Source of the DNA: Macrostomum lignano
Lineage: Eukaryota
Direction of reading: 5' to 3'
Assembly: GCA_002269645.1 (NCBI GenBank)
Contig: NIVC01000020.1
Location: 1,485,500 to 1,549,499 of the forward strand
Length of the DNA stretch: 64,000 nucleotides
A program made the position numbers and the translations under genes. This document shows, piece by piece, positions 11,977-32,120 of the stretch. How positions within the stretch are numbered: position 1 is the stretch's first letter; every line of letters starts with the position of its first letter. The notes beneath the pieces were generated by a model. It was not told where the DNA came from. It saw only the letters and a list, made by a program, of their open reading frames with translations, and ran no database searches.

Positions 11977-12445
11977 CAGGGGCGTCGCCAACGGGGGGGA
12001 CAGGGGGGACATGTCCCCCCCCTGTAAAAGATCTGGGGAGACATGCCAATGCATTGTCCCCCCCCAACCCACCTTGTGGCCCGTTATGGAAATCAATAAT
12101 GTTGCTGCACGGTGACAAAACATAGTGCCTGCGGCGCTAAAATGAGTGCCTGCGGCGCTAAAATGAGTGCCTGCGGCGCTAAAATGAGTGCCTGCGGCGC
12201 TAAAATGAGTGCCTGCGGCGCTAAAATGAGTGCCTGCGGCGCTAAAATGAGTGACCGAGGCGCCAAAATTAGTGCCTGCGGCGCCAGAATGAGTGCCTGC
12301 GGCGCTAAAATAAGTGCCCGTGGCGCAAAAATGAGTGCTGACAACACCGATTCTGAAAATAATATACATGTAAGAATTTAGTCATGTACATGTATAATTA
12401 TTGGCTTTGTCCCCCCCCACCATAAAATCCATGGCGACGCCCCTG
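11977..12445. mobile_element. hAT-like MITE carrying a 21-bp minisatellite
   Basis: 14-bp TIR CAGGGGCGTCGCCA/TGGCGACGCCCCTG. The 8-bp flanks CTTCCATC and CTTGTATC match at 6 of 8 bases. The internal array GCCTGCGGCGCTAAAATGAGT has ~10 copies (12127-12338). Confidence 0.8.
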
Positions 12446-12636
12446 CTTGTATCAAATCTTTTCAGGCGCATTGCCATTGAAACAAAAAACTGTGAAAAAA
12501 TATCCTTTCTTCTGCGCAAAAACTGAAAATTTCGGATATTCAGCTGAAGCGTTTTGAAGCGAAATAAACATTCACTTAAATTTGAAGTTTTCACTTATTT
12601 TACTAGCAGTGGTCCCTGAGTGCTCAGGTGCCTGCT

Positions 12637-14031
12637 CTACGCTACACTCAACAGAGGACGCTCTTCTTGATTGAGTTCATCGCCTGAATAATTACCGTTG
12701 CTCTCATCCTCCTCGCTGAGGACCATCATCTGGTCCGCAGTCGGCAGGATGACGAACTTGTAATAGAAAAAGGTGGCAGTCAGCGTCAGCACGGCGATCA
12801 GGTGGTAGATGAAGAGCAGTGGCTTCGATCCGTTTCGCTCTTTGTTCAGTTCGAATATAATGAAAAACAGTCCCCGACTCAGATAGTTGGCGAACCCCCT
12901 GGCTGTGAACATGACGCCGAGGATCAGGCACTGCGAGCTGTCTGGCAGAAGCGAGCACCCGAGGTCGTAGGCCGCGACCATGACCAGCAGCTCGGCAGCT
13001 CCGTCCAGAACGGACATCAGGGAGTACACGGCCACAGTTGCAGCTGGAGAGCTCAGTCCAACTAGGGTCACAATGATGAGGCAAACATCAACTGAGCACT
13101 TCAGTAGGATTCCAGTCAGAATTCGAATCTTTACGTCCAGCTTCCGTCGACTCTTGACTGCAGCAAATATCAGGGGTACTGCTAGAACTACCAGGGCCAG
13201 ATCTTTCACCCAGTCAGGTGACAGCCACGGCTGGGTCTCAATGTCAATCGTCTCGTTCGTAAAGTATCTCATTTCAGACAGATAAATGGTGGGCCGGTCG
13301 TCATCCAGAAATATCAGAATCAGATTCAGCGCCGAGAAGATCTGGAAGTACTTTAGCATTCTCCTTCTGGTCGGAAGCTCGAAAGGTTCTTCTTCATGAA
13401 TTTCCGGTAAGAGCCCTGTTAGCGCCAGGTAGGCGAGGCTCGCTCCCACGAACACAAAAGTGAAGCTGTTGCCGAGAACATTGGTGGATAAAACATACTT
13501 GTATAGAAAGGTCCCGGACATCAAGTCCCCGAATCCTGCCATGGCATAGTAGATTGATGTCGATACGGTGCAGAATTTGTCATTTCTGTGCCAACAGAAA
13601 AATGCCAGCATAATGTTGGGCTGTACAAGACCAAAGAACACAGGCAGGAGCAGCCACGTTATTACGATTATAGGCGAGTCCTGACACATCAAGCCGAAGT
13701 GCACAGACACGACCAGGAGGACCGTCGAGAGCAGCATTACGATGCCACCGATCTGAAGAACTCTGACGCATCGAATCCAGGCGCTGGACACCAGCCCGCC
13801 CAGCACAGGAAGCAGGTATCTCCCGGTGTACAGCCACAGTGTAGCCGTCCGCATGCCCGAGGGAGCTTCAGCTTGGCTAGCGTTAAAGTAGCACTTCGGC
13901 TCACTGTCGGTCGAAAAGTTGTTCAGCTGGAAGTGGCTCGGATCCAGCGATCTGAACTCGATTTCAACAAGCTTGTATAAAAGCTTCATCACACTGACGA
14001 CAAATATGCAGTTCCGAGCTTGAGTACTCAT
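12637..14031 (-). CDS. SLC15/POT-like transporter, copy 4, 464 aa
   Basis: Intact ORF with the same motif series. Confidence 0.8.
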   Translation of the reverse strand: MSTQARNCIFVVSVMKLLYKLVEIEFRSLDPSHFQLNNFSTDSEPKCYFNASQAEAPSGMRTATLWLYTGRYLLPVLGGLVSSAWIRCVRVLQIGGIVMLLSTVLLVVSVHFGLMCQDSPIIVITWLLLPVFFGLVQPNIMLAFFCWHRNDKFCTVSTSIYYAMAGFGDLMSGTFLYKYVLSTNVLGNSFTFVFVGASLAYLALTGLLPEIHEEEPFELPTRRRMLKYFQIFSALNLILIFLDDDRPTIYLSEMRYFTNETIDIETQPWLSPDWVKDLALVVLAVPLIFAAVKSRRKLDVKIRILTGILLKCSVDVCLIIVTLVGLSSPAATVAVYSLMSVLDGAAELLVMVAAYDLGCSLLPDSSQCLILGVMFTARGFANYLSRGLFFIIFELNKERNGSKPLLFIYHLIAVLTLTATFFYYKFVILPTADQMMVLSEEDESNGNYSGDELNQEERPLLSVA

Positions 14032-14797
14032 GGCTTCAGTTCATGCGATATTCGATTAGTCCTATGTGCTATAATCTGTGCTACAACTACGAGCTTTTGT
14101 AGATGTATTTCCTTGCTTTTACATTTACGCTCGTATGCAGGCTTCTCGCCAACCATTTTGCGCGCCATTGCAGACAAACTAGCGGAATCTGTTCGCCAGT
14201 TACTGCAATTCTTCACTGTGCGACCGACTATCAGCGTACTTGCCCGCTGTGTGGCAGCCTTGGGTAGGACGAGAAAACCCCTCAGCCTCCACCCCGTAGC
14301 CGGTGCCCTGCAGTACGCAGAAGTCGAAAGAGTTGAATAGATGGAATGAAAAATTCAGAGGAGGCACTCTGCCCCCTTATTCAATCCTGCTCCGAGCTCG
14401 GCATTAGAGACCTGTGGCTGCAAGTGAGACAGTCCAGGAAGGATTCACTGGAGTTTGTTTTTCCTAGAGACTGGACATCCGAACCAAGTAAAAATATCCT
14501 CCCACACGACCGTATGTATCAATATGAGCTACCTTTGCAGCCAATATGTAAATGCCTGGGTGCCACGATGCAATGCTGCCTTTCCTTTGGCAATGCTTAA
14601 TTGCCCAACAAAGTCCATATGTGCGCAAGTACAGCAGAAGTAAGAGACATGTGCGTGCATTTCACAGCACACTGGCAGCATCGGACATAAAACAAACACT
14701 GCGTTGATAAAAACTATTTGGGCCTCACTGATGCCAATTATAATTTGCAAGATAGTTTAAAACTGCGCAACCTGCTTCGATCTGTTCTACTACAGCA

Positions 14798-16126
14798 ATG
14801 GAGGGAACTGGAAATCGAGAGTCAGAGTTTGACTCATCCGCTGTAACTCATGTAGCTCTGATTCTCAGTATGAAGCTGTGCAGTCAGGCCGTTCAGGCTT
14901 ACCTTTCGCGCATGGATCCGGAACATTTTCACATGCGCAACGGCAGCTGCTATCTAGATGGAGCTCAGGTCGCCGAGAATTTAGCTCACGCTACCGAGTT
15001 CTGGGCCTCTCTTCTCCCTGTGTTGGGCGGCCTACTTTCATCTATCTGTCTGGGATACATCTCTGTGATGCAGCTAGGCGGCTTTGGGTTCATCTTGAGC
15101 TCTGTGCTCATGTCCATTGCCGAAAGCATGGACTGGATGTGCAGCCATCCCAAGCTCAGCCATGCACTGTGGGTCCTGCCGACACTGAGCGCCGGCATCG
15201 CCGAGCCGGCCATCGTCTACGGAGCATTTCGGTGGCACGGGCAATGTCCCAGAATCCGCACCATGGTTATCGCGCTGCTGTTCCTGTGTGACAAAGTCGG
15301 CGAGCACGTCGGCACCTTACCTTGGCCGGAAATCTTAGGAACAAATCACATCCTATTTGCCATCGCATCGAGCATTGTCTACACTATTCTGTCAATCTCT
15401 TTGCAAGAGTATTCGCACGAGAGTCCTTACAGAATACCAACTTTCAACCGCATCGTACGGTACGCAAAGATCTTCTCCTCTCTGACTATATTCACAGCAG
15501 TGCAGGCTGACTACCACTGGAGGATCTACGCCCAGGAACTAAAAGTTCTCGTTGGGATAGATCTCAAAGACTGGAGCCTGTCGTTGAGGTCCCCGAGTGT
15601 CTTCGGATTGGCTGGGTTTTTCTCGTGCGTCATCGCCACAGTGGCTCTCAGCCGCCAATTTTCTCTGCCCATTCAGCTCAGGATATATGCAGGCATTGTT
15701 TTGGGGCTGCTCAGCTCCACCTTTCTTGCAATTTTCACCGCGGCTTTCGCCGCTTCAAGTGATCCCAGCCTGCTAAACATCTGGCTGCTGGTCTCACTAT
15801 GCGATGGCGTTGCGTACTGTCTCATCACGGTGGCCTATTTTGAGTTCACGGACTCCATCACGAGCCAGGAGTTCAAGCCGTTTGTTATTGGCATCTTGCT
15901 CACCATCTGGGGCATCGGCGGCGCTTTCAGCGAGCTTTCTCGCCAGCTGTTCGACAATGTGCCCATCGACAATCCGATCGGCAAGCCGGCTGCTGGCAGG
16001 AAGCCGCTGTTTTTTGTGTACCACTTGTTCGCGGTTGGGCTACTGGCTGGCAGCCTCCTCTACCACAGGTTCTTGTCGCTTAAATGGTCCGAAACACTTC
16101 TTTCGGAATCAGAAGATACTATCTGA
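14798..16126 (+). CDS. SLC15/POT-like transporter, copy 5 (most divergent), 442 aa
   Basis: MKLCSQ, DPEHF, LLPVLGGLLSSICLG, RYAKIFSSL and KPLFFVYHLFA are all present. A 3' splice-type site (CTACTACAG) lies 2 nt before the ATG. Confidence 0.75.
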   Translation: MEGTGNRESEFDSSAVTHVALILSMKLCSQAVQAYLSRMDPEHFHMRNGSCYLDGAQVAENLAHATEFWASLLPVLGGLLSSICLGYISVMQLGGFGFILSSVLMSIAESMDWMCSHPKLSHALWVLPTLSAGIAEPAIVYGAFRWHGQCPRIRTMVIALLFLCDKVGEHVGTLPWPEILGTNHILFAIASSIVYTILSISLQEYSHESPYRIPTFNRIVRYAKIFSSLTIFTAVQADYHWRIYAQELKVLVGIDLKDWSLSLRSPSVFGLAGFFSCVIATVALSRQFSLPIQLRIYAGIVLGLLSSTFLAIFTAAFAASSDPSLLNIWLLVSLCDGVAYCLITVAYFEFTDSITSQEFKPFVIGILLTIWGIGGAFSELSRQLFDNVPIDNPIGKPAAGRKPLFFVYHLFAVGLLAGSLLYHRFLSLKWSETLLSESEDTI

Positions 16127-16406
16127 TCTCAGAAACTTTGACGAGTCTTTTAGTAGCAGATTCGGTATGAAGTATGCAAAACGTATCTATATGTTGTTCA
16201 AAAGACACAAATGCTTTGCTTTATTGAGGCTTTCTATTAATAAAACCAACAGTCAATACAATAAAAAGCTTTTCAATGTAGCTCGTAATTACAAATCCTT
16301 TGTTATAAATACTTCGTGGTGACAGAAAGCAGACACATCATATGTATGGATAGTATATTCGCACGCATGTGCATCCGAAAGTCATGTCACATAGAGATGT
16401 CTGCAA

Positions 16407-17372
16407 GGACCACTAGAAGTTACCGTTGTATCAGGATGCAACGCGCCCATTTCGCCAATCCCTGGCGACGGACGCAACACTTGCAAATGTTGAAAAATTA
16501 TTTGAAGGCCGCTTGTCTGCATTGCAGCTAAACTTTAAATGCTCATTACTCCAGATCAGTTGCACTTACGAGCTAGAATGATAATTTTTCGCCAGGTGGT
16601 TTGAACTTTTGTTCTCTTTAACATGATGCTAAGTTTGGCGCTACCTGCTATATCCACATGTAGGAACGGCAGGCGTACAGAGTAATGGCTAAAGTAATAT
16701 TTCACTGCAGTCTCAGTTTCAGTTATTTCAACCATTGCTTCCTAGTCTCGACAAAGTAGCGGACCAACCGTATCCTGCAGTTTGGAGGATTTAAAAGGCA
16801 AATAATCTGTACAGTGTTGAATAGGCTGCAAAGAAATCTATATACACTTCACTAACAAAATCAGTAAGGCAATTCTGAAATATTGGCACACCAGCCCAAC
16901 ATGGACTTCAACATTCAAAATATTTCTATTATTGTTTAAATGAACACTGGGAGTCAATTAAAAACTTGTACAGTATTTACAAATTTATTTGCATTCAACT
17001 TCGCTTTCAATCAGAACCTCTATAATTTGATAACTTTGTCATAACAGCTAAAGCTTATGAAACAATACGAGTATATTGGTTTAACTACTTTTCTTTGTTA
17101 GAAAGTTATTTAGAAACTCATATGCTAATTTTCTCGAGCTTTGTTGAACTAGTAGTAGTATGTGGCAGTAGGTTTAACATTAATAAATAATACACACACA
17201 CCGATTCTAGAGCTTGTGAGGCTCAAAGGTTTCTTTAAAACAGTCGTCTAGGATGCTTTTTTTGAAGGCAAACATCGCTGAAAACACATAAACAAGCTGG
17301 CCTTCAAATATGAATAATTTTGCTATATTTACGAGTGTTACGTCCGGATACAACGGTAACTTCTAGTGGTCC
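16407..17372. repeat. Old dispersed inverted repeat (possible decayed MITE)
   Basis: GGACCACTAGAAGTTACCGTTGTATC at 16407 is inverted at 17343-17372. TATTTGAAGGCC-GCTTGT at ~16500 is inverted at ~17290. Confidence 0.55.
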
Positions 17373-18120
17373 TCGGATGTCTGCTCATTTTACATGAGCA
17401 AACCTCTCTTTGTGCCAAGACTGGAAAATCTATGAAAAGGCATAGGCACACAGATAAACAAATGTACTTCAGTATCATCCTGAAGACCAGCTCGTCAACT
17501 ATGAACTAAACAGTACGAAAATTGGCTCACAATGGGCTTTTGCCGAGTTGAATGTGCCATAATTGGTATTTTTATTACTTTGATCATAGTAAGATCTGCT
17601 GTGCAAAGATATCGACATGACATCAGAGAAGACGATTAAGATTACCTATTAACTCGTCCTTGCATCTGGGATCGCCGATTGCTCTTACTCGTTTGTCTTG
17701 ATGTGACGACTGCTCCCCAGACTGGAGAAACTGGAGTCATACGAACCGCACTGCTAAAGTAAAGTTCTTACTTTCTCTGCATTAAATGAAGGTTAAAAGT
17801 CCAATTGGTGCCATAAGGCGCTTTGAAAGTCATCAGCTCCCAGCCGGCCACAAAGTTCAGTGGGTAATCAGCAAGCTTACATGAACTGACAGCTGACTGC
17901 TAAAACCTGACTCGTGCTTTCAACCGCAGTGGCAAGCTGAAACTGAAGGAGCAGATTAGCAATTTGACCTTTGCAGTTGAGGCGAAGCTCTTCAAATAAA
18001 ACAGATAAGATACAAGAGTGAAATTTTCATTACATAACAGAACGACTCTGAAATAAGACGGCTCCGCTTTCACCATTCATTGCGGAGTTTTACACCTGAA
18101 CTGATCCTACCGGTGCAGCA

Positions 18121-19734
18121 ATGAGCCGCGAGTTCCTCCTGGAAGAGAAGATCATCGCCGTCAAGAAGTCGCACTTCGAAGGCGTTGGAGTGGTCGGTGG
18201 CTTGGACAGAGGTACCAAAGATTATTACTTTGCTATAATTTCTCTTTACTAAACATACCAATACTGTAAGCGATCAATACCAATACTGAAATCTCGATAC
18301 CACCAGGCTGCACGCTGACAAAGGTCCTGTTCAGCACCGTGAAGGATGATGAGCATTACAACCTGCACTTCGCTCTGTTCAAGAACTCTCACTTCGAGGC
18401 CGGCTTGGACTACCTAAAGGAGAAGGGCATGGTTGTTCAGGTTCCCGGAGCGAAGCTGCACGTCACTGGAGCTGGTTGCGACATGAACCGCGAGCTGATC
18501 AAGCAGAAGCTGGGACTCGAGTACGTTGAATTGTGCATTTTGTTTCTTATGAGTCACTTTTAGAGGAAGAAGGTCAATCATGGGTGAATAGTCTAAGCTT
18601 TGCATCCCAGTAATGTGCTGCACACTCCCACTTTAGAATCCAATTCATCAACGAGTTCCTTACGCAAGGCCGCGGCACCCACTGGCTGCTTAGCTGCGCT
18701 GATGACTCCGAGATCTGCTACCCGGAGCCTGAGATCGATTTATCGGAGTTTGAGAGCCTCAAGTCGAACAACTTCCTTGATCAACTAGTGAAGAAGTGGA
18801 AGCGGGACATCGGTGAACCTATTGAGGGGCAGAAGTTTCCCTGCGTCATGCTTTTCATGGGATCTGGCGCCGGCATTCTCAGGGCAAGTTGTCAATCAAA
18901 TATGCGGGAAACTGAGAAGGATCTGGCGTAATCGGAGCACACAATCTTATGGAGTATGTCACGCAAATTTGCTTTCTCAGATCGAGGAGAACGGAATGTC
19001 CGACATGGTCGGCGGCGTCTGGTTCGCTGGTCGCAGCTTCCTTGGCCTGAGCAAGCTGCTGCTGGGCACCGATGACTACGATGAGATCCTGGAGCTGGCC
19101 AGCAAAGGCAAGCGAAACAGCGTCGATACGGAGGTCAAGGACGTCATTGCCAACGATCCGAACTCGCCGTACGGCCAGTTTCCGCCGAATCTTCCCATAT
19201 TTTCGTTCGGCAAAGTGATCGACACCGACAAGAAGCGTAAGCTGTATCAGAATTTTGGTCTCTTGAAGTTTTATGCCTGTGTATTTGCTTTATGAAATAA
19301 AGGGAGCAATTTGATTGGCTTCTTGCATGCAGTATCTGACCTGTCTCGCGAAGACCTCGCCAACTCGCTGGTGTTCAGCTTCGCCTACAACGCATTCAGC
19401 CAGCTGGCGCTGGTAGCCCAGACCTCAAAAGTGTCCAAACTGTACATGGGTGGCAACTTCTTCCGTCACGAGCTCATCCGGAGCGAGATTGTGAAGACAA
19501 TGCGGCTCTTCACAGGCGTAAGTGTGCTAGATTTCTGTGGTTGGCAGACAATTTTCTTAGAAATAATGTCTCTTTTTGCTTGCAAATTGTCAGGACGCAA
19601 TCGCGGTGAATTTCGTGAAGACTGGTCACACCGGAGCCATTGGCGCCATGATCAGCAAGCCGGAGGACGAGCTCAAGTACCTGGCCTTCATGCAGCAGGC
19701 TGAGCAGCAACCGACTCAGGGAGCAAGCTCTTGA
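18121..19734 (+). CDS. Divergent type II pantothenate-kinase-like (fumble/ASKHA) kinase, paralogue A; exons 18121-18211, 18307-18520, 18637-18883, 18981-19236, 19333-19517, 19594-19734 (377 aa)
   Basis: The spliced frame is open throughout. Motifs and their PanK counterparts: GLDRGCTLTK (DIGGTLxK), VTGAG (TGGG), INEF (DEL), FMGSG (NIGSG), ELASKGKRNSVDTEVKD, FSFGK, SREDLA, GGNFFR and TGAIGAM. Confidence 0.85.
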
Positions 19735-20040
19735 CTGATTGATTGATTTATGAATGATCAATAGCCAGAAACTTCTCTATTTTATTCTATAAGAACATTA
19801 TAGCGGTATGAGATATCACATCTCTATGATTGTTATAGTAAATGCTTTAGTTCAGTTGTGATTTTCTATAAACAGTTATTTAGATTATAGTGTAACAATG
19901 TTTACAAGCACGAAAGTATCTAATAGTCCTCACCTATTCAAAATAGCAACTGCAAATACATCAATGGTGTCCATGCACGCTAAATCCATTCAACGAGCTC
20001 TTCAAAGACATTTCGAAAGAGACTGAGAGGTTTCAAAACG

Positions 20041-20643
20041 GAGTTAAGGCACAGAGCAGAGCCCGGATCCGAGCGGAGTCGAGGCACAGAGCAGAGCCCG
20101 GATCCGAGCGGAGTTGAGGCACAGAGCAGAGCCCGGATCCGAGCGGAGTCGAGGCACTGAGCAGAGCCCGGATCCGAGCGGAGTTGAGGCACTGAGCAGA
20201 GCCCGGATCCGAGCGGAGTTGAGGCACTGAGCAGAGCCCGGATCCGAGCGGAGTTGAGGCACAGAGCAGAGCCCGGATCCGAGCGGAGTCGAGGCACAGA
20301 GCAGAGCCCGGATCCGAGCGGAGTTGAGGCACTGAGCAGAGCCCGGATCCGAGCGGAGTTGAGGCACTGAGTGGAGCCTGGATCCGAGCGGAGTCGAGGC
20401 ACAGAGCAGAGCCTGGATCCGAGCGGAGTTGAGGCACTGAGTGGAGCCTGGATCCGAGCGGAGTCGAGGCACAGAGCAGAGCCCGGATCCGAGCGGAGTT
20501 GAGGCACAGAGCAGAGCCCGGATCCGAGCGGAGTTGAGGCACAGAGCAGAGCCCGGATCCGAGCGGAGTTGAGGCACAGAGCAGAGCCCGGATCCGAGCG
20601 GAGTTGAGGCACAGAGCAGAGCCCGGATCCGAGCGGAGTCGAG
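20041..20643. repeat. 35-bp minisatellite (GAGCGGAGTTGAGGCACAGAGCAGAGCCCGGATCC), ~17 copies
   Basis: Head-to-tail units with point variants and no unique spacers. Confidence 0.97.
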
Positions 20644-21448
20644 GTGCGGAGTGGGGTCAGAATTTTGGTCCAGTTTACGTATCTGCGGATAAATAAAGGC
20701 CTTGACTTGGTTTTATTGTGGAGTATCATTCATAAAGTCGCTGTTACTTGGCACAGGGCCGCTTGACAATCGAAAGCGTATCTGCTATCATATTAGGGTG
20801 TTAATAGCTAAGAAAAGTCAGCAAAAGACGCTTGAGCACAAGGTCGCAGCTAAATTGACACACTGGTACAATCTCTGTGCCAGTACAAATGAGGGCACAC
20901 CAATACGAACTGGGACCAGCAGTTAAAGAATTTACCAGGCGATCAGTTGTTGCTCTACCCGTGCACTTTGCTGGGCAAATAGCGCATAATGAGACAGCAG
21001 CTGATTAGATACGGGCTATTGGGCTCATCGAGAGCTTTGACTCGCCTGACAACACGAAAGGTTTCGCCTGCGTCCCAAGGAGCTGGGCTGGAGTTGAATT
21101 AAATTATCTTATTTCATTGCTTTGCCTGAAAACAAAGAAAACTCGAAGAGCGGCTGCTCAAGCCAACACAAGTTCATTGCACAGAATTGGAAATGCGTTT
21201 AGAAAGAGGCAGGTCTGTAATCAAAAGTGAGAGCTCGAGCTATCGAGCCTGAGCTGCGCCAAATATGGGAGTGGAGCAACGATAAGAAGAAAGAAATCGA
21301 CCAAAAGGAGCAAGCAGACGCGATAAGAGAAAGTTAGCGCTATTCGTTACTTAAACAAGCGTACTTGATTCCCCGTGTCTGCCGCTTCACTAAGTATTCG
21401 TTTATAGAAATTTTTTTTTGATTCGCAGTACCACCCGCAGGTGCATCA

Positions 21449-23040
21449 ATGAGCCGCGAGTTCCTCCTGGAAGAGAAGATCATCGCCGTCAAGAAGTCGC
21501 ACTTCGAAGGCGTTGGAGTGGTCGGTGGCTTGGACAGAGGTACCAAATATTATTATGCAACACTATTTTTAACTAAACATACCAATATTGGTACTTGTGC
21601 CTGTAAGCGTATTTTAAATCTCGGTGCCACCAGGCTGCACGCTGACAAAGGTCCTGTTCAGCACCGTGAAGGATGATGAGCATTACAACCTGCACTTCGC
21701 TCTGTTCAAGAACTCTCACTTCGAGGCCGGCTTGGACTACCTGAAGGAGAAGGGCATGGTTGTTCAGGTACCCGGAGCGAAGCTGCACGTCACTGGAGCT
21801 GGTTGCGACATGCACCGCGAGCTGATCAAGCAGAAGCTGGGACTCGAGTACGTCCCACTGAAGCAATGAGCACACAGAAGTTGGATTGGTAATTAACTCT
21901 TGCTGCAAAACTGTCTCTCCCCTATTCAGAATCCAATTCATCAACGAGTTCCTCACGCAAGGCCGCGGCACCCACTGGCTAATAGGGTGCGCTGATGACT
22001 CCGAGATCTGCTACCCGGAGCCCGAGCTGGATATGTCCGAGTTTGAGGGCCTCCAAGCAAACAACTTCCTACAAAAACTAATTGAAAAGGCTAAGAAAGA
22101 CCTCGGAGAGCCCATAGAGGGCCAGAAGTTTCCCTGCATGATGCTGTTCATGGGATCTGGTGGTGGAATAATGAAGGTCAGTTAAAATGGAAGACTTTTG
22201 TAGAAGAATATGCAATAACAGCAAAGTTCACTTGGATCATTCGGTTTAAACAACAAAAAATCAGATCGAGGAGAACGGAATGTCTGACATGGTCGGTGGA
22301 CTTTGGTTCGCCGGTCGCAGCTTCCTTGGCCTGAGCAAGCTGCTGCTGGGCACCGATGACTACGATGAGATCCTGGAGCTGGCCAGCAAGGGAAGGCGAA
22401 ACAATGTCGATACGGAGGTGAAGGACGTCCTTGCCAACGATCCGAACTCGCCGTACGGTCAGCTTCCGCCGAACCTTCCTGTCTTTCCGTTCGGCAAGGC
22501 GGTTGATACTGACAAGACACGTAAGGGTGTAAAGCACATGTTTAGGAGTGGAAAAGTACGTATGACTGAGTGAAAGTCAACAAAGTTATTACATTGGACC
22601 CTAACCCATTAATACAGTGGCTGACCTGAGCCGAGAAGACTTGGCGAACTCCATCGTGTTCAGCTTTGCGTACAACGCATTCACAAACTTGGCTTTGGCG
22701 GCTCAGACTTCCAAGATCCCCAAGCTCTACATGGGCGGCAACTTTTTTCGCCACGAGCTCATTCGAGCCGAGATTCTTAAGAGCGTGCGCCTTTTCACTG
22801 GCGTAAGCTTCGTTCATTATTCGTAAATATTTTTTGAAAACCAGACTTGCCTTTTATCGATTCAAAACTGTTTACTGCTGATGCAATTCGCAGGAGTCAA
22901 TCGCGCTGAATTTTCTGATTACTGGCCACACTGGAGCCATTGGCGCCATGATCAGCAAGCCGGAGGACGAGTTCAAGTACCTGGCCTTCATGCAGCAGCA
23001 GGCTCAGCAGGCGCCCGACGGAGCCAACTCTCCAGCTTGA
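21449..23040 (+). CDS. Pantothenate-kinase-like kinase, paralogue B; exons 21449-21539, 21634-21847, 21930-22176, 22265-22520, 22618-22802, 22894-23040 (379 aa)
   Basis: Exons 1-5 have the same lengths as in paralogue A (91/214/247/256/185) and all introns are GT-AG. The spliced frame is open, and AATAAA lies at ~23209. Confidence 0.85.
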
Positions 23041-23569: not shown

Positions 23570-24943
23570 ATGCGAGTCCACGCTCTGAGAGGCGTTCTCT
23601 TGGCTTGCTTGATGAAGCTTTGCACCAAGATAACTGAAACGTTATTTACGATAGAAGATCCATCAAACTTTCGGCTGTCGGACGAAGCCGGCTCTTTAAA
23701 TGAATCGTGCCATTTCTCCACTGAGCTATCAGCAACCAACTCTCAAGCATCAATCACTACGTGGATCTACACCTTAAGATACTCACTGCCAGTACTTGGT
23801 GGGCTGATCTCCAGCGTTTGGTTTGGAACTGTTGCCGTACTTCAGATCGGCGGGATTTTTATGCTGCTGTCGACTGTGCTGCTATCCGTATCGGTGTACC
23901 TCGGATTCATGTGCCAAGCATCGCCAATAATTACAGTCACATGGCTACTGCTTCCAGTGTTCTACGGGCTCACTCAACCGAGCATAGTACACTGCATGTT
24001 CAGCTGGTTCAAGCGGCCGAAGTTTTTCACAATTGTATCAGCAACATATTATGCAGTTTCCGTAACCGGAAAATACATCGCGCTGTTGTTGTTGCCACTG
24101 AACAAAGCTGAGTGGTTGGGACCTAATTCGTCTGTCATCTACATTGCAATAAGCGTACTGTTCGTTGCCTTGCCGTCTTTCTTCCCGGTAGTGTCCCGCG
24201 AAGAACCATTCGAAATGCCAACCCTATTTAGAATGAGCAGGTACTTCCAGATCTTCTCTGTCCTCATAATATTCCTTTTTGCCGTCGACGACACCAGATC
24301 TGCTGTCTACGCAACGGAACTTGAGTATTATCTCAACGCGACAGCGAATATCGAGACCTACTTCTGGCTTTCCCCGAAAACACAAAACCTCTCTGCCATG
24401 CTGGTCAGCTGCGTGGCTCTGATAATTGCTGCCTCCATCAGCCGACGGCAGCTTCCCGTTGGGCTTCGGATGCAGGCCGGGATCCTCCTCGGAGCTGCGG
24501 TTGCAGCGAGTCTCACCGTCTTCACCGCGGTCGCTAAAAAGCCCGGCTACTCGGCTGTGGTCACTGTTTACACGGCAGCCTCTATCCTAGATGCAGCTGC
24601 TGAGGTTCTGGTCATGACCGGTGCCTACGACCTGCTTCAGCAGATTACGCCTGGTGGTACCGAGTCTTTCGTCATCGGGATCATGTTCACTGTGTGGGGT
24701 CTGGCCAACCTCGCTAGCCAGGTGGCCCTTCTAACGATGTCTCGATGGCTGCAGCCGCTGGACGACGATCATCCCAAACTGTTTGTGTACCACCTCGTGT
24801 CGGTCATGCTGCTTCTGGTCTGCTCTGCTTACCACAAAATCATTGCTCTGCCTCTGGCAGCTCAGGTGACCCCTACAGAAATATTGAATGAGGAAGAGAC
24901 AGTAAGTGAGCTGCAACCTCTGCTGAGTTCAGATGACGTATGA
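23570..24943 (+). CDS. SLC15/POT-like transporter, copy 6, 457 aa
   Basis: MKLCTK, DPSNF, YSLPVLGGLISSVWFG, FMCQASP, DAAAEVL and LFVYHL are all present. AATAAA lies at ~24966. Confidence 0.8.
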   Translation: MRVHALRGVLLACLMKLCTKITETLFTIEDPSNFRLSDEAGSLNESCHFSTELSATNSQASITTWIYTLRYSLPVLGGLISSVWFGTVAVLQIGGIFMLLSTVLLSVSVYLGFMCQASPIITVTWLLLPVFYGLTQPSIVHCMFSWFKRPKFFTIVSATYYAVSVTGKYIALLLLPLNKAEWLGPNSSVIYIAISVLFVALPSFFPVVSREEPFEMPTLFRMSRYFQIFSVLIIFLFAVDDTRSAVYATELEYYLNATANIETYFWLSPKTQNLSAMLVSCVALIIAASISRRQLPVGLRMQAGILLGAAVAASLTVFTAVAKKPGYSAVVTVYTAASILDAAAEVLVMTGAYDLLQQITPGGTESFVIGIMFTVWGLANLASQVALLTMSRWLQPLDDDHPKLFVYHLVSVMLLLVCSAYHKIIALPLAAQVTPTEILNEEETVSELQPLLSSDDV

Positions 24944-25925
24944 AAGTGACAGATCGATTTTGTCAATAAAGAAATTTACTGTTTTTATGTGTAATACATT
25001 TAGTCGATTTCGACATGCAGTTTTCTCTTTCTGAATGACACCCAAAAGTTCAGTTGTGTTCTACTTGACTTTGTAAACTTTCTGTAGCGACTAAAATACT
25101 ACCTCTGATGGATAGAAAATGCTGAAAAAATACTCAATTTGTTCATTCGACTAGTTATAGCTTATTGCATCAAAAACGACCTCGATTTTAAGGAGTTCAG
25201 AAATGAATTTGGAATTCTGGACCTAAGGTGTCACCTGTAGAGAGCGAAGCCGAGAGAGAGAAAGTTATGTGTTGTGTGTAGCCGATAAAGCCTCAATCCA
25301 TTGTAGGCTCTGTGCGATCGATTTATATATTTAGCAGCGACCCTGCAGTCGAGACTGCGTACATTAAAAACAGAAAGCCAAGAATATTGGATGTACATCG
25401 GAAATGCACACCAGGACTAAAAACACTTATTATGCAAGCACTGGGCAGCAGGTGCCTACAATTCTCCCCAACCAGAGAGATCCCAGGGGATAAAAAAAAC
25501 GAGCTCAATTACTCTGTTACTACCGGCCCAAACCCCAAAGCAATCAAAGCGGCCCGCCCACGCACAAAAACCCTAGGATCACAATTTGTAGCTGAGCACT
25601 CTGTTACGGGCAGCTCTTGGATGTTCTCGCGTGGCGATGCTACCGCTGGGTAGACCGGCGGGCTCTCCGGCAGGTTGGCCGGCAGGTTGGCCGGCAGGTT
25701 CGCCGGCAGGTTGGCCGGCAGGTTGGCCGGCAGGCTCTCCGGCAGGCTGGCCGGCAGGCTGGCCGGCAGGCTGGCCGGCAGGCTCTCCGGCAGGTTGGCC
25801 GGCAGGCTCTCCGACCAGGGGCCGCCGCTGTAGAGACGTGGCGCATGCAGGACTGTTCGCCGCGTTGCAGGACACACGTGTCTCCCTGGACCTGCTTGAC
25901 TGTCCAAGGATGTGGCTCGAACGGC

Positions 25926-28900
25926 TTGACTTACTTGACTTAGCTGCAGGGTGGTCCGTAGACACAGCGGGGAGGCGAGGGTCGCCCATTCCGCTAGCCC
26001 CTGAAGGCCCGCAGACAGGCAGAGGCGTGGGGCCGGTCAGGGTGGTCCGCCGGTCCGTCCTGCAGCGTGATCTTCCGTTGGGAAGAAACTGGCTCGTCTA
26101 GTCGCCCGAAGGAACTGGATGAGCCGTGGGATGCTGTCGGGCTGGCAAACCTCGTCAATGGACGGGTTCGGCCCGAGGTAGCGTAGCCGGTCTCTGTTAA
26201 AGAAAGGGCAGTGACAGACAAAGTGCTGAGCATCTTCATTGTGGCACTCGCAAAAGGGGCAAATTTCGCTCTCGAGGTCGCCTCGGAGGAAGCAGTGCCT
26301 GGCGAGGTAGCCATGGCCGGTAAGGGTCATGACAAGGGCTCGAATATCCTTCCGATTCTGGTTCAGAAGGATGTTTCTGAGCCTGTGAGACGGGCAAGGA
26401 ACCGCGGCACGAGATTGCCGGCAGTTTTGGGTGCCCGCCCATCTGTCCCTGTGGAGGGAGTCAGCCCAGTCGTCGATCTGACGATTGATGACTGTCAAGG
26501 GCATAGGGACCAGGGGGGCAGGGCCGAAGAAAGAGCCAGAGCCGCCCCTCTTGGCGAGGGTGTCTGCCAGCTCGTTCCCCGGAAACCCTGCGTGCCCTGG
26601 GATCCACTTCAGCCTGACAGTATTGCTTCTGGCCAGGAGGTTGAGCTGCCGGGCGCAGTCGGCGACTGTCCGGGAGTTCGTTGTGGTGTGGCAAAGGGCC
26701 TGTAAGGCCGCTTGGTTGTCGGAGTGGATGACAATAGTCTTTCCTCTCGTAACCTTGGCGTTCAGCTCTGCAGCGCAAGAGCTGATGGCAAGGACTTCGT
26801 TCTGGAAGACTGTGGAGAGTCTACCAGTGTGCTGGGCATGCGTGGCAATTACGCGGCCGTTGATGATGATGCAGACCCCAAAGCCGGCGCGACCGTCTTT
26901 GATGGATCCGTCCGTGTAGCAATGGACCTCCTGGAAATTCCAGTGGTCATTGGCAGCATCCCTAGAGGGGATGGTGACCTTGTAGCGCTGAAAGAGGTTG
27001 AGAGTGCGGGGTTCGCCGTCAGATAGGACGTGGAGCCCGCCGCTGTCTCTCAAGTCCTTGAGGCAGAGGTCAGCGTGGGGCAGAAGCTTGCGCTTAGCCA
27101 TGGCCCTATGGGGCTGGATTCGAATGCCAGCGTCAGCTAGACGGCGGGCAGTCTTAGCCGCTTCCCTGCGGACAAAGATGTCCAGCGGAGGAATGTTGAG
27201 GAAGGCGTTGAGGCCATCGTAAGGAGCAGACGGAGGGGCGCTCATGATCGTGCGACAAGCGCGCCCTTGCGCTCTCCTGAGAGCCTCTGGACAGGTCTTT
27301 ATCTGCAGGGCGCTAGCCCAGATCAGGCCGCCATACGAGATAGCGGGCCTAACCATTGCAGTGTAGATCCACCAGAGGCGCTTGGGGGTGAGCCCCAGGT
27401 GGTGCCGACAGCCCTGCGCAATTGCGCGAGGACTGCGAAGGCCTTTTTGGCTTTTGTTTGAACGTAGGGTGACCAGTTCAGCCTGTGGTCCAGGGTAATA
27501 CCCAGACATTTAGTCTGCTTGCAGAAGGGGATTTCCCTTCCGTAAAGCGTGAGCGGCCGAATCTGCCACTTGGTCCTGCTGGTGAACATGATCGCTGCGG
27601 TCTTAGTCTCAGAGAGCCTTAAACCACAGCGGTCCGCCCATTGCTCAGCAGCGTAGATGAAGTTCTGAAGAAGGTCCCTGAGGGTATCAGGGACGGACCA
27701 GATGCCACCGCGGTGACATCGTCCGCATATCCAACTTTCAGAATCGGGTCAGGCCGAACATCCCGAAGGAGCTCATCGATGACCATATTCCAGAGAACTG
27801 GAGACAGCACCCCACCTTGCGGGCTACCTTTGCAGACGGGGACCGTCCTCTGGTAGCCCAGCAGACTGGCGGTGGCCGTGCGATGGCTGATCATGTACAT
27901 GATCCATCTGGTGAGATGTGAGTGCGTTTGCCTCTCACAAAGAGCTCTTCGGAACGCCTCAAAGAGGACGTTATCGAAGGCGCCAATGATGTCCAGGAAG
28001 ATCCCCAGAGCAAAGCCATTACCAAGCACGGCCTTCTCGAGTTTATCGACCAGGACGTGCAGCGCGCTTTCAGTGGAGCGACCCGCCCGAAAAGCGTGCT
28101 GGTTCTCGCTGAGAGGTTTGTTCTTCAGCTCAACAGAGAGAAGGCGCCAAAGCACCAGTCTCTCCATCAGCTTGACCAGGGAGGAGGTCAAGCTGATCGG
28201 TCTGAAGGATTTGATAGAATGGTAGTCCGGGCGGCCTGGCTTAGGGATAAAGATCACCTTTGTCTCGGTCCATGCCTGTGGGACATAACCAAGCGTGATG
28301 CATGCCCGAAGAAGGCTGCAAAGTTTGCGCAGGAAGCCTGGGCATTTAACCGCCTCTCTTAGAAGGGCCGGTACAATGCCGTCGGGTCCTGGGGCTTTGA
28401 AAGGCTTGAAGGAATTTGCCGCTCTCACAATGCGGTCCTCCGTGATGATAGAGGCAGCCAGCGCGTGACCTCCCTCCGAGTGATCCGGAGTGGTCTGGTT
28501 AGCTGGCTCGTTGGGAAAAACGCAGTGAGCATTACATCAAGCGTTTCCCCTGGGTTGTCCGTGGACGTACCGTCGGTGCGTTTGACCGAGGAGAGCTTAG
28601 ACATTTTGTCCAGCGTGAGCGCTTTCACAACTCTGGAGGTGGGGCGTGAGCCCTCTAGCTCCTCACAGTATTGTCGCCATTTTTGAGCCTTTGCATTCCT
28701 AACCTGCCTTTTAAACTCATGAATTGCTTCATGATAGGCGGTTTGGTCTGCAGGGCTCTTAGTTTTAGTTGCTCTGCGGTGGAGTCTCTTAGCCCTGCGA
28801 CGGAGGTTGCCGAGCTCGGGATTCCACCACGGCGCCGATTTTTTCCCTTTATAGGCTTTTAAAGGGCAGGACGCCTCAAAGGCGGCGGTTAGCGTCTCTG

Positions 28901-31665
28901 TCAAAACAGTCGCGCACTCATCCGCCTCTCGGCACGACGTGATCGTGGATGGTTGGCCAGGAGACCGATGGAATTCCTTCAGGGCGAGCCCGAAGGTTTC
29001 CCAATCCGTATTTCTGGCGTTCCGTCTCCACGTAACACGAGTTGCGCTACGCGCGGCCATTAGGTTGAAGGAGATGAACTTGTGATCCGAGAGTGAGGAC
29101 ACTGAAGCACCCGCCACGCCCCAATACTCTGGTAGAGTCTGGGCGTTGCGAGCGTAGCGTCGATCACCTCCGACCACCGTCCGTTGTCAAAGGTAGGGGT
29201 GGACCCAGAGTTGCAGAACTCGAGGGTCGTAGAGGCAACGTAGGCTAGGAGGTCTTCGCCTCTCTGATTAATGCCAGTGCTGCCCCAGTGAGTGTGGTGG
29301 GCGTTGATGTCGCCGGCAACCATGAGCTCGTAGTTTTTGGCAGAGCAGAGCTCTACCAGCGTAGCGAGGGCTCTGGGGACGACCGCAGCATCGCCTGGTA
29401 GGTAGACCGAGGCTATGAGGGTGGTCTTCCCTGGAAGAAGGTCCTCGGATTAGATGACGCAGATGTCCCTGTTGGACAGGTCCGATCTGAGCCACGCACT
29501 GAGCATTTTAATCGTAAAGATGCAAGCTCTGGGAGGCTGGTTGGCCTCGAGGGTAGTATAAAAACAATTGTAGCCGCAGGGGCGTTTGAGACTTACCCTT
29601 TGAGGTCCAGAGTTCCTGGACGAGATGAGCCCCGGCGTGTCGAGCTCGGCGTAACGCATAAGGTTGACCGAAGCTGCGACGCAGTGTTGCAGATTAATCT
29701 GCAAGCAGTGGATTCCCTGGCTGCTGATCATTGTCACGCAGTTGGGGAATCGTTGAGCAGGTCATCCTCCTCCTTTTCAGTGGTGGGTGACCCGCAGACC
29801 TCCATGGGAGTTTCAGCGTCCTCAGCAGTTAGGGTGGCTGTGGAGTCCTCCGCGGACGTGAGCCCAGCGTGGACGTTGCCGTCGCCTCCCCTGCGTGCTT
29901 CGGTGCTGTCACTGCCCGTCCCCTCTGCCTCGTCGGTCAGGTCGATGCGGGTGGCGCCAGCCTCCTGGTGAGTCACAGACTCGAACCAGTCGGTCGGAGC
30001 CTCCCCACTTAGAGTCTGGCCTTCTGGCTGTTGGGGTGGAGCGCGAGAAGCGCGGGCCCGCTCACGATGCGCACGAAGGTTTTGGCCTGGTCCAGCGCGC
30101 GCTGGATCAGGCCGGACCTCCGGGTGCTCCTGGCGGGTCTGCGATTGCGATTTCCGGTTTCAGCAGCGCGAACTGCCTTACCGGGCATAGGATCGGCCGT
30201 TTGCCTCGGCTTCTTTGCCGGAGGAGCCTGGGCCCCAGTTTCGGTTTCGGAAGCTTTGGCATTCTTGGCTTCATCAGCTTTCCGCTCCTCGCAACGGAGG
30301 ATGGTCAGCTGAGTCAGACCAATATGAATTGTGGACTTAGGCGGCAAGCGCTTAGCCCAGTCATCAGAGAGCCCTAGGATCACCGTGGCCCCCTTCTCCT
30401 TGCGGGAAGTGGCGTGGTGTAGGAGCCCGTTGACCTCAAGGTCGGGGTGCAGCTTTAGCAATATTTGCCTAAGCTGATCTCCGGACTTAATGGCACTGCC
30501 GGCCGGGATCCAGACGCGAAAGCGCTGGGTCTTCTGTCGTTCGCCCTCGCTGGCGAAGACGAGCTTGCCGAGCTTCTTGGGCCAGTTCAGCTTTGGCAGA
30601 AGCTCGCGTAGATTGCGGCTGCTCTCCTCCGAGCTGCACCAGATGAAGATGCAGCCGTCGGTCTTGGCAGACTTGACCACGCTCACAGGGCGGCCCGCCA
30701 GGAGCTGGTCGATGAGCGCAGCATCGATGGTGCGCCAGGCACTGTCGAGCTCGTCGGCCGTGAGGTCCTGCTCTTCCCCGAAGACGATGACCGCCGGTTG
30801 GAGCTTGACCTTTGAGGCGTAGTTGGTGGCGGCGGTTCCCGAAGGCCCGGCCGCGCTTGTAGCAGGTATACTGGGTGGCTCACCAGCGGGGGTTGTATCC
30901 TGGGGGGCAGGGGTTGCTGTGGTTCCTTTCGGCCCAACAGCAGCCTCGCCCTCCCTAGGTTCCCCTCCGCCGGTGGCCGGCCCGCAGTACCCCGTAGTCG
31001 CCGTCGCCGCTCGTTGCGGCGTTGGTTGCGGGTGCGTCGGGCTTCAGCGGAGGGCCCGGTCGCGCGTGCGGGCATGTCACCGGCCGAGCCGGCGGCAAGC
31101 CCATCTGCCCCCGGTGGGGCGGCGCTGGTGCCAGAGTCACCGGCCGGAGTTGCCGGGGCCCCGGCTTCAGCGGGGGTTAAAGAGGCGGATGACGCCATAG
31201 CTGAAAGCGGGAAGGAGTGAGCTGAGTCACAAAAGAAAGAGGAAAGAAGAAAAAGAAAAGGACCGCTAGCGACCGGACAACCCCCCGGCCTTCCAGCCCA
31301 TCGGCACGGTCAAACACCTTAGGCATTAGGGGGTACGTTAAGCAGTACCACGGCCTGCAGGCTGGCAAGCCAGACCCGCATACCCAAATTCGGCCGAAGC
31401 CACTGGATGGGTCGCCAGCGTCGGAGCCCAGTCTGTCCAGCAGCCCTAGGGTCTGCCTTGAACACACGCGGGGACGAGTACCCTGGGTCGACTTGTGAAA
31501 CAGCGTGAGGGGGGGTCTGCGGCTGCCAGCGGCAAATAGCGGGTGCAGACCTCCCTCTCCAGCCTTGACCTGCTGAAGATAGGGGCAGGCGTGAAGCATC
31601 GCAGACCGTAGCCCATAGGCCTGGTCTGTCTCATACTTCACTGGCGTGCTGAATACACCTTCGCG
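25926..31665 (-). mobile_element. Full-length non-LTR retrotransposon of LOA/R1 type (ORF1 + APE-RT-RNase H), frameshifted
   Basis: APE LQINLQH...GDINAH; RT FRPISL, QHAFRAGRSTE, FLDIIGAFD, PQGGVLSP, YADD; RNase H YTDGS, EVLAI, SDNQAA, WIPGH...GNELAD; C-terminal CPFC...H...C; AAGTC/AAGT tail. ORF1 lies at ~29734-31198. Confidence 0.92.
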
Positions 31666-32120
31666 TACTACCGGCCCAAACCCCAAAGCAATCAAAGCGG
31701 CCCGCCCACGCACAAAAACCCTAGGATCACAATTTGTAGCTGAGCACTCTGTTACGGGCAGCTCTTGGATGTTCTCGCGTGGCGATGCTACCGCTGGGTA
31801 GACCGGCGGGCTCTCCGGCAGGTTGGCCGGCAGGTTGGCCGGCAGGTTGGCCGGCAGGTTGGCCGGCAGGTTGGCCGGCAGGCTGGCCGGCAGGTTGGCC
31901 GGCAGGCTCTCCGGCAGGCTCTCCGGCAGGCTGGCCGGCAGGTTGGCCGGCAGGCTCTCCGGCAGGTTGGCCGGCAGGCTCTCCGGCAGGTTGGCCGGCA
32001 GGCTCTCCGACCAGGGGCCGCAGCTGCGAGACGTGGCGCATGCAGGACTGTTCGCCGCGTTGCAGGACACCCGTGTCTCCCTGGACCTGCTTGACTGTCC
32101 AAGGATGTGGCTCGAACGGC
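31666..32120. repeat. Direct duplicate of 25518-25925 flanking the LINE; contains a coding 12-bp minisatellite (CAGG[T/C][T/C][G/T][G/C]CCGG)
   Basis: Both copies run TACTACCGGCCC...CTCGAACGGC. The left copy has 13 repeat units and the right has 17. Confidence 0.92.

Follow-up and report, generated by a model that had tools for sequence, protein, structure and literature searches.

A 64,000-nucleotide stretch of the Macrostomum lignano genome (positions 1,485,500 to 1,549,499 of the forward strand of contig NIVC01000020.1, assembly GCA_002269645.1; hereafter the window, from whose first nucleotide positions are counted) contains at 18121-23040 two head-to-tail genes on the + strand, copies A and B, with products resembling pantothenate kinase (PanK). 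Judging from their sequences, these proteins most likely belong to an uncharacterised, anciently diverged branch of the type II PanK (Fumble, ASKHA) family. The boundaries given to the region by an initial annotation, which was made from the nucleotide sequence, coincide exactly with the start codon of copy A and the stop codon of copy B. Both genes were spliced by hand according to GT-AG rules:

18121-19734, + strand: PanK-like copy A, six exons, 377 amino acids
18121-18211, 18307-18520, 18637-18883, 18981-19236, 19333-19517, 19594-19734, + strand: exons of copy A
21449-23040, + strand: PanK-like copy B, six exons, 379 amino acids
21449-21539, 21634-21847, 21930-22176, 22265-22520, 22618-22802, 22894-23040, + strand: exons of copy B

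The five introns of each copy are short (76-116 bp), and the reading frames of A and B are clean and complete. All introns of copy B are GT-AG; intron 3 of copy A (18884-18980) is GC-AG, with a donor (AGG/GCAAGT) that matches the textbook GCAAGT consensus. Of 377 aligned positions, 52 differ between the two proteins (86% identity). An annotated M. lignano protein in GenBank, BOX15_Mlig034563g2, agrees with copy B at 377 of 379 residues, and the UniProt entry A0A1I8GKH7, also from M. lignano, is identical to the C-terminal 193 residues of copy A, which are those encoded by exons 4-6; it is a partial model that begins exactly after the GC-AG intron. Spliced transcripts with polyadenylation signals, 82-88% identical to copy A, occur in other samples (Logan RNA assemblies), and the transcripts P0001 and P0003 from such assemblies presumably derive from close Macrostomum relatives. 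No spliced-leader sequence, which would be a sign of operon organisation, was seen on related transcripts. The six-exon layout of A and B is found again in the paralogue Mlig027093.

Both copies fall within the Fumble / type II PanK fold family and within the ASKHA superfamily. The Pfam profile Fumble (PF03630; gathering cut-off 28.5 bits) matches copy A with 138.4 bits (E = 4e-40) and copy B with 129.8 bits (E = 2e-37) over profile positions 41-333 of 334. This match, which ends at residue 351, 26-28 residues before the C-terminus, is the only Pfam domain in either protein, and the DUF89 domain of PANK4-type proteins was not detected by Pfam in A or B. Profile-profile alignment with canonical PanKs by hhalign gave a probability of 100% and E = 2.5e-50. 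A structure was modelled with AlphaFold2, as the initial annotation had proposed, for a proxy designated P0002 (copy B with two substitutions), and has the PanK fold, with a mean predicted local distance difference test (pLDDT) score of 80 and a predicted template modelling (pTM) score of 0.80; its sole long stretch of low confidence, residues 245-265, corresponds to the flexible flap of PANK3 (PMC6199309). The best 50 matches of this model in a Foldseek search of the PDB were all PANK1/2/3, yeast Cab1 or the type II PanK of Staphylococcus aureus (E down to 5e-18; template modelling score 0.52-0.66 by query length and 0.60-0.78 by target length). A and B thus share fold, domain family and similar size with the eukaryotic type II PanKs (PANK1-3, Cab1), but the identity of these enzymes to the P0002 model is only about 20% in the Foldseek alignments. 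The bacterial type II PanKs of the S. aureus CoaA/CoaW type have the same fold and align with the C-terminal half of A and B, but are more distant matches (E ~1e-6), about 265-285 amino acids long, and do not have the insertions that A and B have in common with eukaryotic PanKs. In the NCBIfam equivalog model TIGR00555, copy A scores 126.7 bits and copy B 116.3 bits against a cut-off of 247.6, while human PANK3, run as a control, scores 378.7.

The roles of the active-site residues are known from human PANK3. Pantothenate is held there through hydrogen bonds, from Glu138, Ser195 and Arg207 on one protomer and from Val268' and Ala269' on its partner, and the site is stabilised by the pairs Asp137-Tyr258' and Glu138-Tyr254'; two protomers contribute to a type II PanK active site, and there are heteromers in which one site is incomplete (PMC8366970). 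Arg207 binds pantothenate, the E138A variant is catalytically dead, a hydrophobic cavity on the flexible flap is formed by Val250', Ile253', Tyr254', Tyr258' and Ala269', and Arg306' and Trp341' line the end of the pocket at the dimer interface (PMC6199309). The reference human PANK3 sequence was checked against PDB chain 3sms_A (residues 10-370 identical), and residues of A and B were mapped onto it by three methods (phmmer/hmmsearch against the PDB, MAFFT with canonical PanKs, and hhalign profile-profile alignment), all of which agree. The motifs of the two copies lie as follows:

18205..18323, + strand: copy A, PHOSPHATE-1 loop DRGCTLTK (D29-K36 = PANK3 D17-K24), split by intron 1
18647..18658, + strand: copy A, INEF; E108 is the counterpart of the catalytic Glu138 of PANK3, with Asn in place of D137
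18860..18874, + strand: copy A, GSGAG, PHOSPHATE-2 hairpin; Gly181 in place of the pantothenate-binding Ser195
19005..19037, + strand: copy A, M193-S203, MVGGVWFAGRS; Met193 in the Arg207 column and Arg202 in the Gly216 column
19449..19481, + strand: copy A, ADENOSINE motif GGNFFR, followed by Arg319 in the PANK3 Met331 column
19621..19650, + strand: copy A, TGHTGAIGAM in place of canonical HEGYFGAVGA, invariant among the nearest relatives
21533..21650, + strand: copy B, PHOSPHATE-1 loop DRGCTLTK, split by intron 1
21940..21951, + strand: copy B, INEF, Glu108 retained
22153..22167, + strand: copy B, GSGGG, Ser195 replaced by Gly
22289..22321, + strand: copy B, M193-S203, MVGGLWFAGRS
22734..22766, + strand: copy B, GGNFFR, followed by Arg319
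22921..22950, + strand: copy B, TGHTGAIGAM

The residues that handle the nucleotide are largely kept. All of the ASKHA motifs (PHOSPHATE 1, DxGxT/S...K; PHOSPHATE 2, the GSG hairpin; ADENOSINE, GGN..R) and the catalytic carboxylate are found in both copies, with Gly20, replaced by Cys, as the exception. In PANK3 numbering (A/B numbering in parentheses), the retained residues are Asp17 (D29), Gly19 (G31), Thr21 (T35) and Lys24 (K36) of PHOSPHATE 1; Thr114-Gly115 (T84-G85); the catalytic base Glu138 (E108); Gly191-Ser192 (G177-S178) of PHOSPHATE 2; Gly215 (G201); and Gly321-Asn322 (G310-N311) and Arg325 (R314) of ADENOSINE. Val250, Tyr258 and the FGK motif of the flap (272-274) are likewise retained. 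Changed in both copies are Gly20 (to Cys), Asp137 (to Asn), Ser195 (to Gly181), Arg207 (to Met193), Gly214 (to Ala), Gly216 (to Arg202) and Thr217 (to Ser), so that the GGGT loop at 214-217 reads AGRS, as well as Arg306 (to Ala), Trp341 (to Phe) and the HEGYFG motif (to TGHTG); Tyr254 is Ile in copy A and Leu in copy B. In place of xRVxGTSLGGGT, copy A has DMVGGVWFAGRS and copy B DMVGGLWFAGRS. The observation that had first drawn attention to these genes, namely that the catalytic Glu is retained while the pantothenate-binding Ser195 and Arg207 are replaced, is borne out by all three alignment methods, and every motif quoted in its support (DRGCTLTK, INEF, GSGAG in A and GSGGG in B, TGHTGAIGA, FVKTGH versus FLITGH, and SQLALVA versus TNLALAA) is present in the spliced proteins. 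Because A and B lack Ser195 and Arg207 and remain below the TIGR00555 cut-off, they do not qualify by sequence as pantothenate kinases in the functional sense. Judged by the residue roles known from PANK3 and PANK4, the phosphoryl-transfer apparatus of A and B appears complete, and the pocket for acceptor and regulator appears to have been rebuilt on both protomer faces.

The unusual features of A and B are shared by a group of divergent relatives. When 1.84 billion representative proteins were searched exhaustively with HMMER, using a profile built from the closest relatives, 1971 Fumble proteins were retrieved, the top ranks of which are stand-alone proteins of about 340-430 amino acids that resemble A and B in these features. 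A word-indexed profile search based on 27 members of the family contributed just two more sequences, and a search with P0012 as the query just one relative. Five paralogue groups of M. lignano belong to the group (Mlig034563, Mlig027093, Mlig022685, Mlig027024 and Mlig007788), as do two proteins of the annelid Owenia fusiformis, one of the annelid Capitella teleta and two of the nemertean Tubulanus polymorphus, a taxonomic spread that rests on three cluster look-ups, the other relatives being environmental, JGI or Logan/SRA-derived transcripts. Members are annotated variously as hypothetical, as "Glucokinase", as "Ppx-GppA domain-containing protein" or, automatically by JGI, as "type II pantothenate kinase". 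A full-text literature search yielded no paper on the A and B genes or on a divergent spiralian PanK-like group.

Conservation was counted in an alignment of 38 stand-alone relatives, the median pairwise identity of which is 24%. Only 23 columns are at least 80% conserved, and nearly all of these are invariant in canonical PanKs also; they include D17, G19, K24, T114, G115, E138, G191, S192, G215 and G321. Asp17 and Lys24 are present in all 38 relatives and Glu138 in 36. The columns of Ser195, Tyr254, Arg306 and Trp341 show no conservation. A basic residue is found at two new positions: Lys or Arg in the Gly216 column (28 of 38 relatives), which is Arg202 of A and B, and Arg in the Met331 column (36 of 38), which is Arg319. 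The His of TGHTG (His343 of A and B, in the Tyr356 column) is present in 20 of 38 and is invariant in the closest relatives. The initial annotation had reckoned with the possibility that a proper alignment would place another Arg at the Arg207 site; none of the 38 relatives has Arg in the aligned column, which in most of them is occupied by Met, Val, Phe or Leu, but the basic Lys/Arg202 and Arg319 are nearby in the sequence.

The phylogeny recommended at the same time was computed as a bootstrapped neighbour-joining tree with canonical PanKs, and in it the canonical PanKs and the PanK-DUF89 (PANK4-type) proteins form a clade with 98% support that excludes A, B and every other divergent protein. 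When the tree is rooted on bacterial type II PanK, the canonical PanKs are nested within a grade of divergent proteins, but, in view of the long branches, no reliance was placed on this rooting, and use was made of the unrooted split (98% support) alone.

Selection on both A and B is purifying and strong: for the ratio of nonsynonymous to synonymous substitution rates (dN/dS, Nei-Gojobori), A against B gives 0.20, and comparisons that include the transcripts P0001 and P0003 give 0.08-0.12. Similarity of the two loci at the DNA level extends from 9 bp upstream of the ATG to just before the stop codon. Their synonymous divergence is a mosaic, being at most 0.12 in codons 1-120 and 0.15 in codons 201-240 but 0.34-3.3 elsewhere, from which an old duplication followed by partial gene conversion is deduced; conversion would have homogenised the first ~120 codons and codons ~201-240 later. 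The suggestion that differences between A and B near the C-terminal pocket might mean two substrates found no support: only two of the 52 differences are at columns that the group conserves, both of them within the gap-rich C-terminal tail, the sites of FVK/FLI before TGH and of SQLALVA/TNLALAA are variable among the closest relatives too, and dN/dS between the copies is 0.20.

Because the catalytic core stays invariant and the former pocket does not, and because polar residues specific to the group have become fixed and purifying selection acts strongly, the preferred reading, with a probability of roughly 0.55, is that A and B are active ASKHA phosphotransferases with a substrate other than pantothenate. 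They would bind a nucleotide triphosphate and pass its gamma-phosphate to the hydroxyl of a small molecule, with Glu108 as the general base. The acceptor would be a small molecule other than pantothenate, probably one without the pantothenate carboxylate, since the carboxylate-binding Arg207 has been lost and a hydrophobic residue gained in its place. Classical acyl-CoA (acyl-coenzyme A) feedback would probably be absent as well, since the pocket common to pantothenate and the pantetheine arm of acetyl-CoA has been lost. Candidates for new ligand contacts are the group-specific Lys/Arg202, Arg319 and His343 of TGHTG. The proposal of the initial annotation, that these are active ASKHA kinases which either use a new acceptor or lack CoA feedback, fits both the conserved core and the purifying selection, activity itself being predicted from sequence.

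Some of the group-specific residues may serve the nucleotide. The 214-217 loop is presumably equivalent to LAGRD of actin and LGGED of Hsc70, placed by the nucleotide rather than by the acceptor, and the strand-to-helix loop of TGHTG presumably to the loops that carry Lys336 of actin and Asp366 of Hsc70. By this analogy, both loops may lie next to the adenosine and not next to the acceptor, in which case the way the nucleotide is recognised could have changed too.

A wider and more tentative proposal, to which slightly less than even odds are given, is that the group constitutes an unrecognised, spiralian-wide family of metabolite kinases, an old derivative of type II PanK with its own substrate and an acceptor or nucleotide pocket formed by the Arg of the Met331 column, the Lys/Arg of the Gly216 column and the His of TGHTG, represented by at least five paralogue groups in Macrostomum.

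Several points weigh against A and B being kinases of a new acceptor. Literature searches gave no enzymatic, ligand-binding or expression data for any member of the group. Replacement of Gly20 by Cys, of GGGT (214-217) by AGRS and of Asp137 by Asn could each weaken catalysis. Arg202, Arg319 or His343 might restore the contact with the carboxylate, in which case the proteins would still be pantothenate kinases, and conservation of the ATP site is also compatible with a nucleotide-binding, non-catalytic regulator. For copy A in particular, the sole database model opens at exon 4, and transcription through the GC-AG intron is a prediction.

The idea that A and B are pseudo-enzymes or regulatory subunits, which would bind nucleotide or partner a PanK with no catalysis of their own, is considered unlikely, although it has precedents in the dead kinase domain of amniote PANK4 and in PanK2 of the apicomplexan PanK1/PanK2 heteromer. 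PANK4 is regarded as a pseudokinase owing to Glu138Val and Arg207Trp (PMC11022721; PMC8861153; PMC9352595), so that loss of Arg207, which A and B have in common with the PanK-fold domain of PANK4, is one of the two substitutions held to inactivate it (PMC11022721); a fish PANK4-like protein among the matches has His at 207 and Arg at 216. The substitutions in the P-loop (Gly20 to Cys), in the GGGT loop and at Asp137 could be read in the same way, and at least five M. lignano paralogue groups are available for pairing in a family in which active sites are built from two protomers and heteromers with one incomplete site are known (PMC8366970). However, amniote PANK4 has lost the catalytic Glu, whereas the divergent group keeps Glu138 in 36 of 38 members and Asp17 and Lys24 in all; amniote PANK4 also carries a C-terminal DUF89 domain, whereas neither DUF89 nor any other domain is attached in A and B; and PANK4-type proteins group with the canonical PanKs in the neighbour-joining tree, apart from the group of A and B. 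Since Glu is kept and DUF89 is absent, A and B are not of the PANK4 type. Apicomplexan PanK2, a divergent second PanK homologue that looks non-functional by its sequence, deviates in the nucleotide motifs and at Asp137 while keeping the trans residues Tyr254' and Tyr258' (PMC8366970). A and B show the opposite arrangement, having lost the pantothenate contacts on both faces and kept the nucleotide motifs, which are the best-conserved part of the group; as these motifs are degenerate in PanK2, A and B do not fit its pattern. Nor could any A/B dimer rebuild the pantothenate site, because residues contributed in cis (S195, R207) and in trans (Y254, R306, W341) are changed alike.

Equally doubtful is the possibility that A and B have remained CoA-pathway kinases that phosphorylate pantothenate or a close analogue, for instance pantetheine or pantothenol, in another binding mode in which Lys/Arg202 or Arg319 replaces Arg207. 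Pantetheine and pantothenamides also serve as substrates of type II PanKs. Two conserved basic residues have appeared in the group where one was lost, Val250, Tyr258 and FGK (272-274) of the flap are retained, and one relative bears the label "type II pantothenate kinase", but this is an automatic name only. Such a role is hard to reconcile with scores that are half the TIGR00555 equivalog cut-off, with a column 207 that is without Arg in 38 relatives and mostly hydrophobic, and with the lack of conservation of Ser195, Tyr254, Arg306 and Trp341; moreover, by analogy with actin and Hsp70, the 214-217 loop, and Lys/Arg202 with it, would be placed by the nucleotide and not by the acceptor. That A and B are decaying duplicates, pseudogenes or annotation artefacts, with motif changes due to random drift, is highly improbable: copy A does have a non-canonical GC donor, a partial database model and no counterpart on the collinear contig NIVC01002260.1 described below, but the donor has the textbook consensus, both frames are full, with no stop codon or frameshift, dN/dS is 0.08-0.20, and these substitutions have become fixed also in relatives from three phyla that are as little as 24% identical.

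Type II PanKs are viewed as having one function, the gating of coenzyme A synthesis, the known exceptions being dead domains (PANK4) and obligate partners (apicomplexan PanK2). The branch that includes A and B combines an apparently intact catalytic core with a putatively rebuilt ligand pocket and purifying selection, is distributed over at least three animal phyla and has multiplied in Macrostomum. If its members are active, they would clearly exemplify how the type II PanK scaffold can take on a new enzymatic activity, and the automatic annotations of group members would be corrected; if inactive, they would merely be another family of pseudo-enzymes. Because M. lignano is a model organism amenable to transgenesis and RNA interference, the question is directly testable.

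The tandem arrangement is not present in every copy of the locus. Contig NIVC01002260.1, which carries Mlig034563g2, is collinear with the window at 97-98% identity but lacks window positions 12363-19974, a 7.6-kb segment that contains copy A and two genes resembling transporters of the major facilitator superfamily (MFS); the comparison is with positions 7829-8073 of L001, the locus on that contig. One haplotype or homeologue thus has the tandem pair and another does not. In the window, the 7.6-kb segment is flanked by two minisatellites, one with a 21-bp unit (12124-12338) and one with a 35-bp unit (20039-20644), only ~240 bp apart in NIVC01002260.1. The 35-bp minisatellite, located between A and B, has 17.3 copies with a 95% match, and its array is longer in NIVC01002260.1. 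A 249-amino-acid open reading frame (ORF) at 19980-20729 (- strand) was rejected as a gene, being a read-through of this minisatellite, which generates spurious long ORFs in several frames.

The PanK-like pair is bracketed by six intronless ORFs for multi-pass membrane proteins of 442-477 amino acids, the mutual identity of which is 27-61%:

1070-2494, - strand: intronless multi-pass membrane protein ORF
3213-4640, - strand: intronless multi-pass membrane protein ORF
6435-7868, - strand: intronless multi-pass membrane protein ORF
12637-14031, - strand: intronless multi-pass membrane protein ORF
14798-16126, + strand: intronless multi-pass membrane protein ORF
23570-24943, + strand: intronless multi-pass membrane protein ORF

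Only the last of these, which begins 530 bp after copy B on the same strand, has a Pfam match, a weak one to MFS_1 that is below threshold. A functional linkage of the PanK-like pair to the MFS-like genes was considered and dropped, as there is no such neighbour at two other PanK-like paralogue loci (covered by L005, L006 and L007). The counterparts of ORFs 3213-4640 and 6435-7868 in NIVC01002260.1 (L001 1017-2443 and 4148-5578) are split across frames, and are either haplotype pseudogenes or the result of indel errors in the assembly.

Further downstream, the window contains ORFs like those of retrotransposons. A GC-rich block on the - strand at ~26000-34000 (0.57-0.64 GC, compared with ~0.47 nearby) contains such ORFs in fragmented form, with RNase H, RVT_1 reverse transcriptase and an integrase core accompanied by a zinc knuckle, besides a PNMA/gag-like ORF. 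At 41912-45282, also on the - strand, two adjoining ORFs have pol domains of the Ty1/copia type, one containing RVT_2 and the other a gag-pre-integrase domain, an integrase core, a Pol beta-barrel, an SH3-like domain and a zinc knuckle. A short tandem repeat with 12/24/36-bp periods, of the type CCGGCAGGCTGG, is located at 25655-25813, just downstream of the MFS-like ORF.

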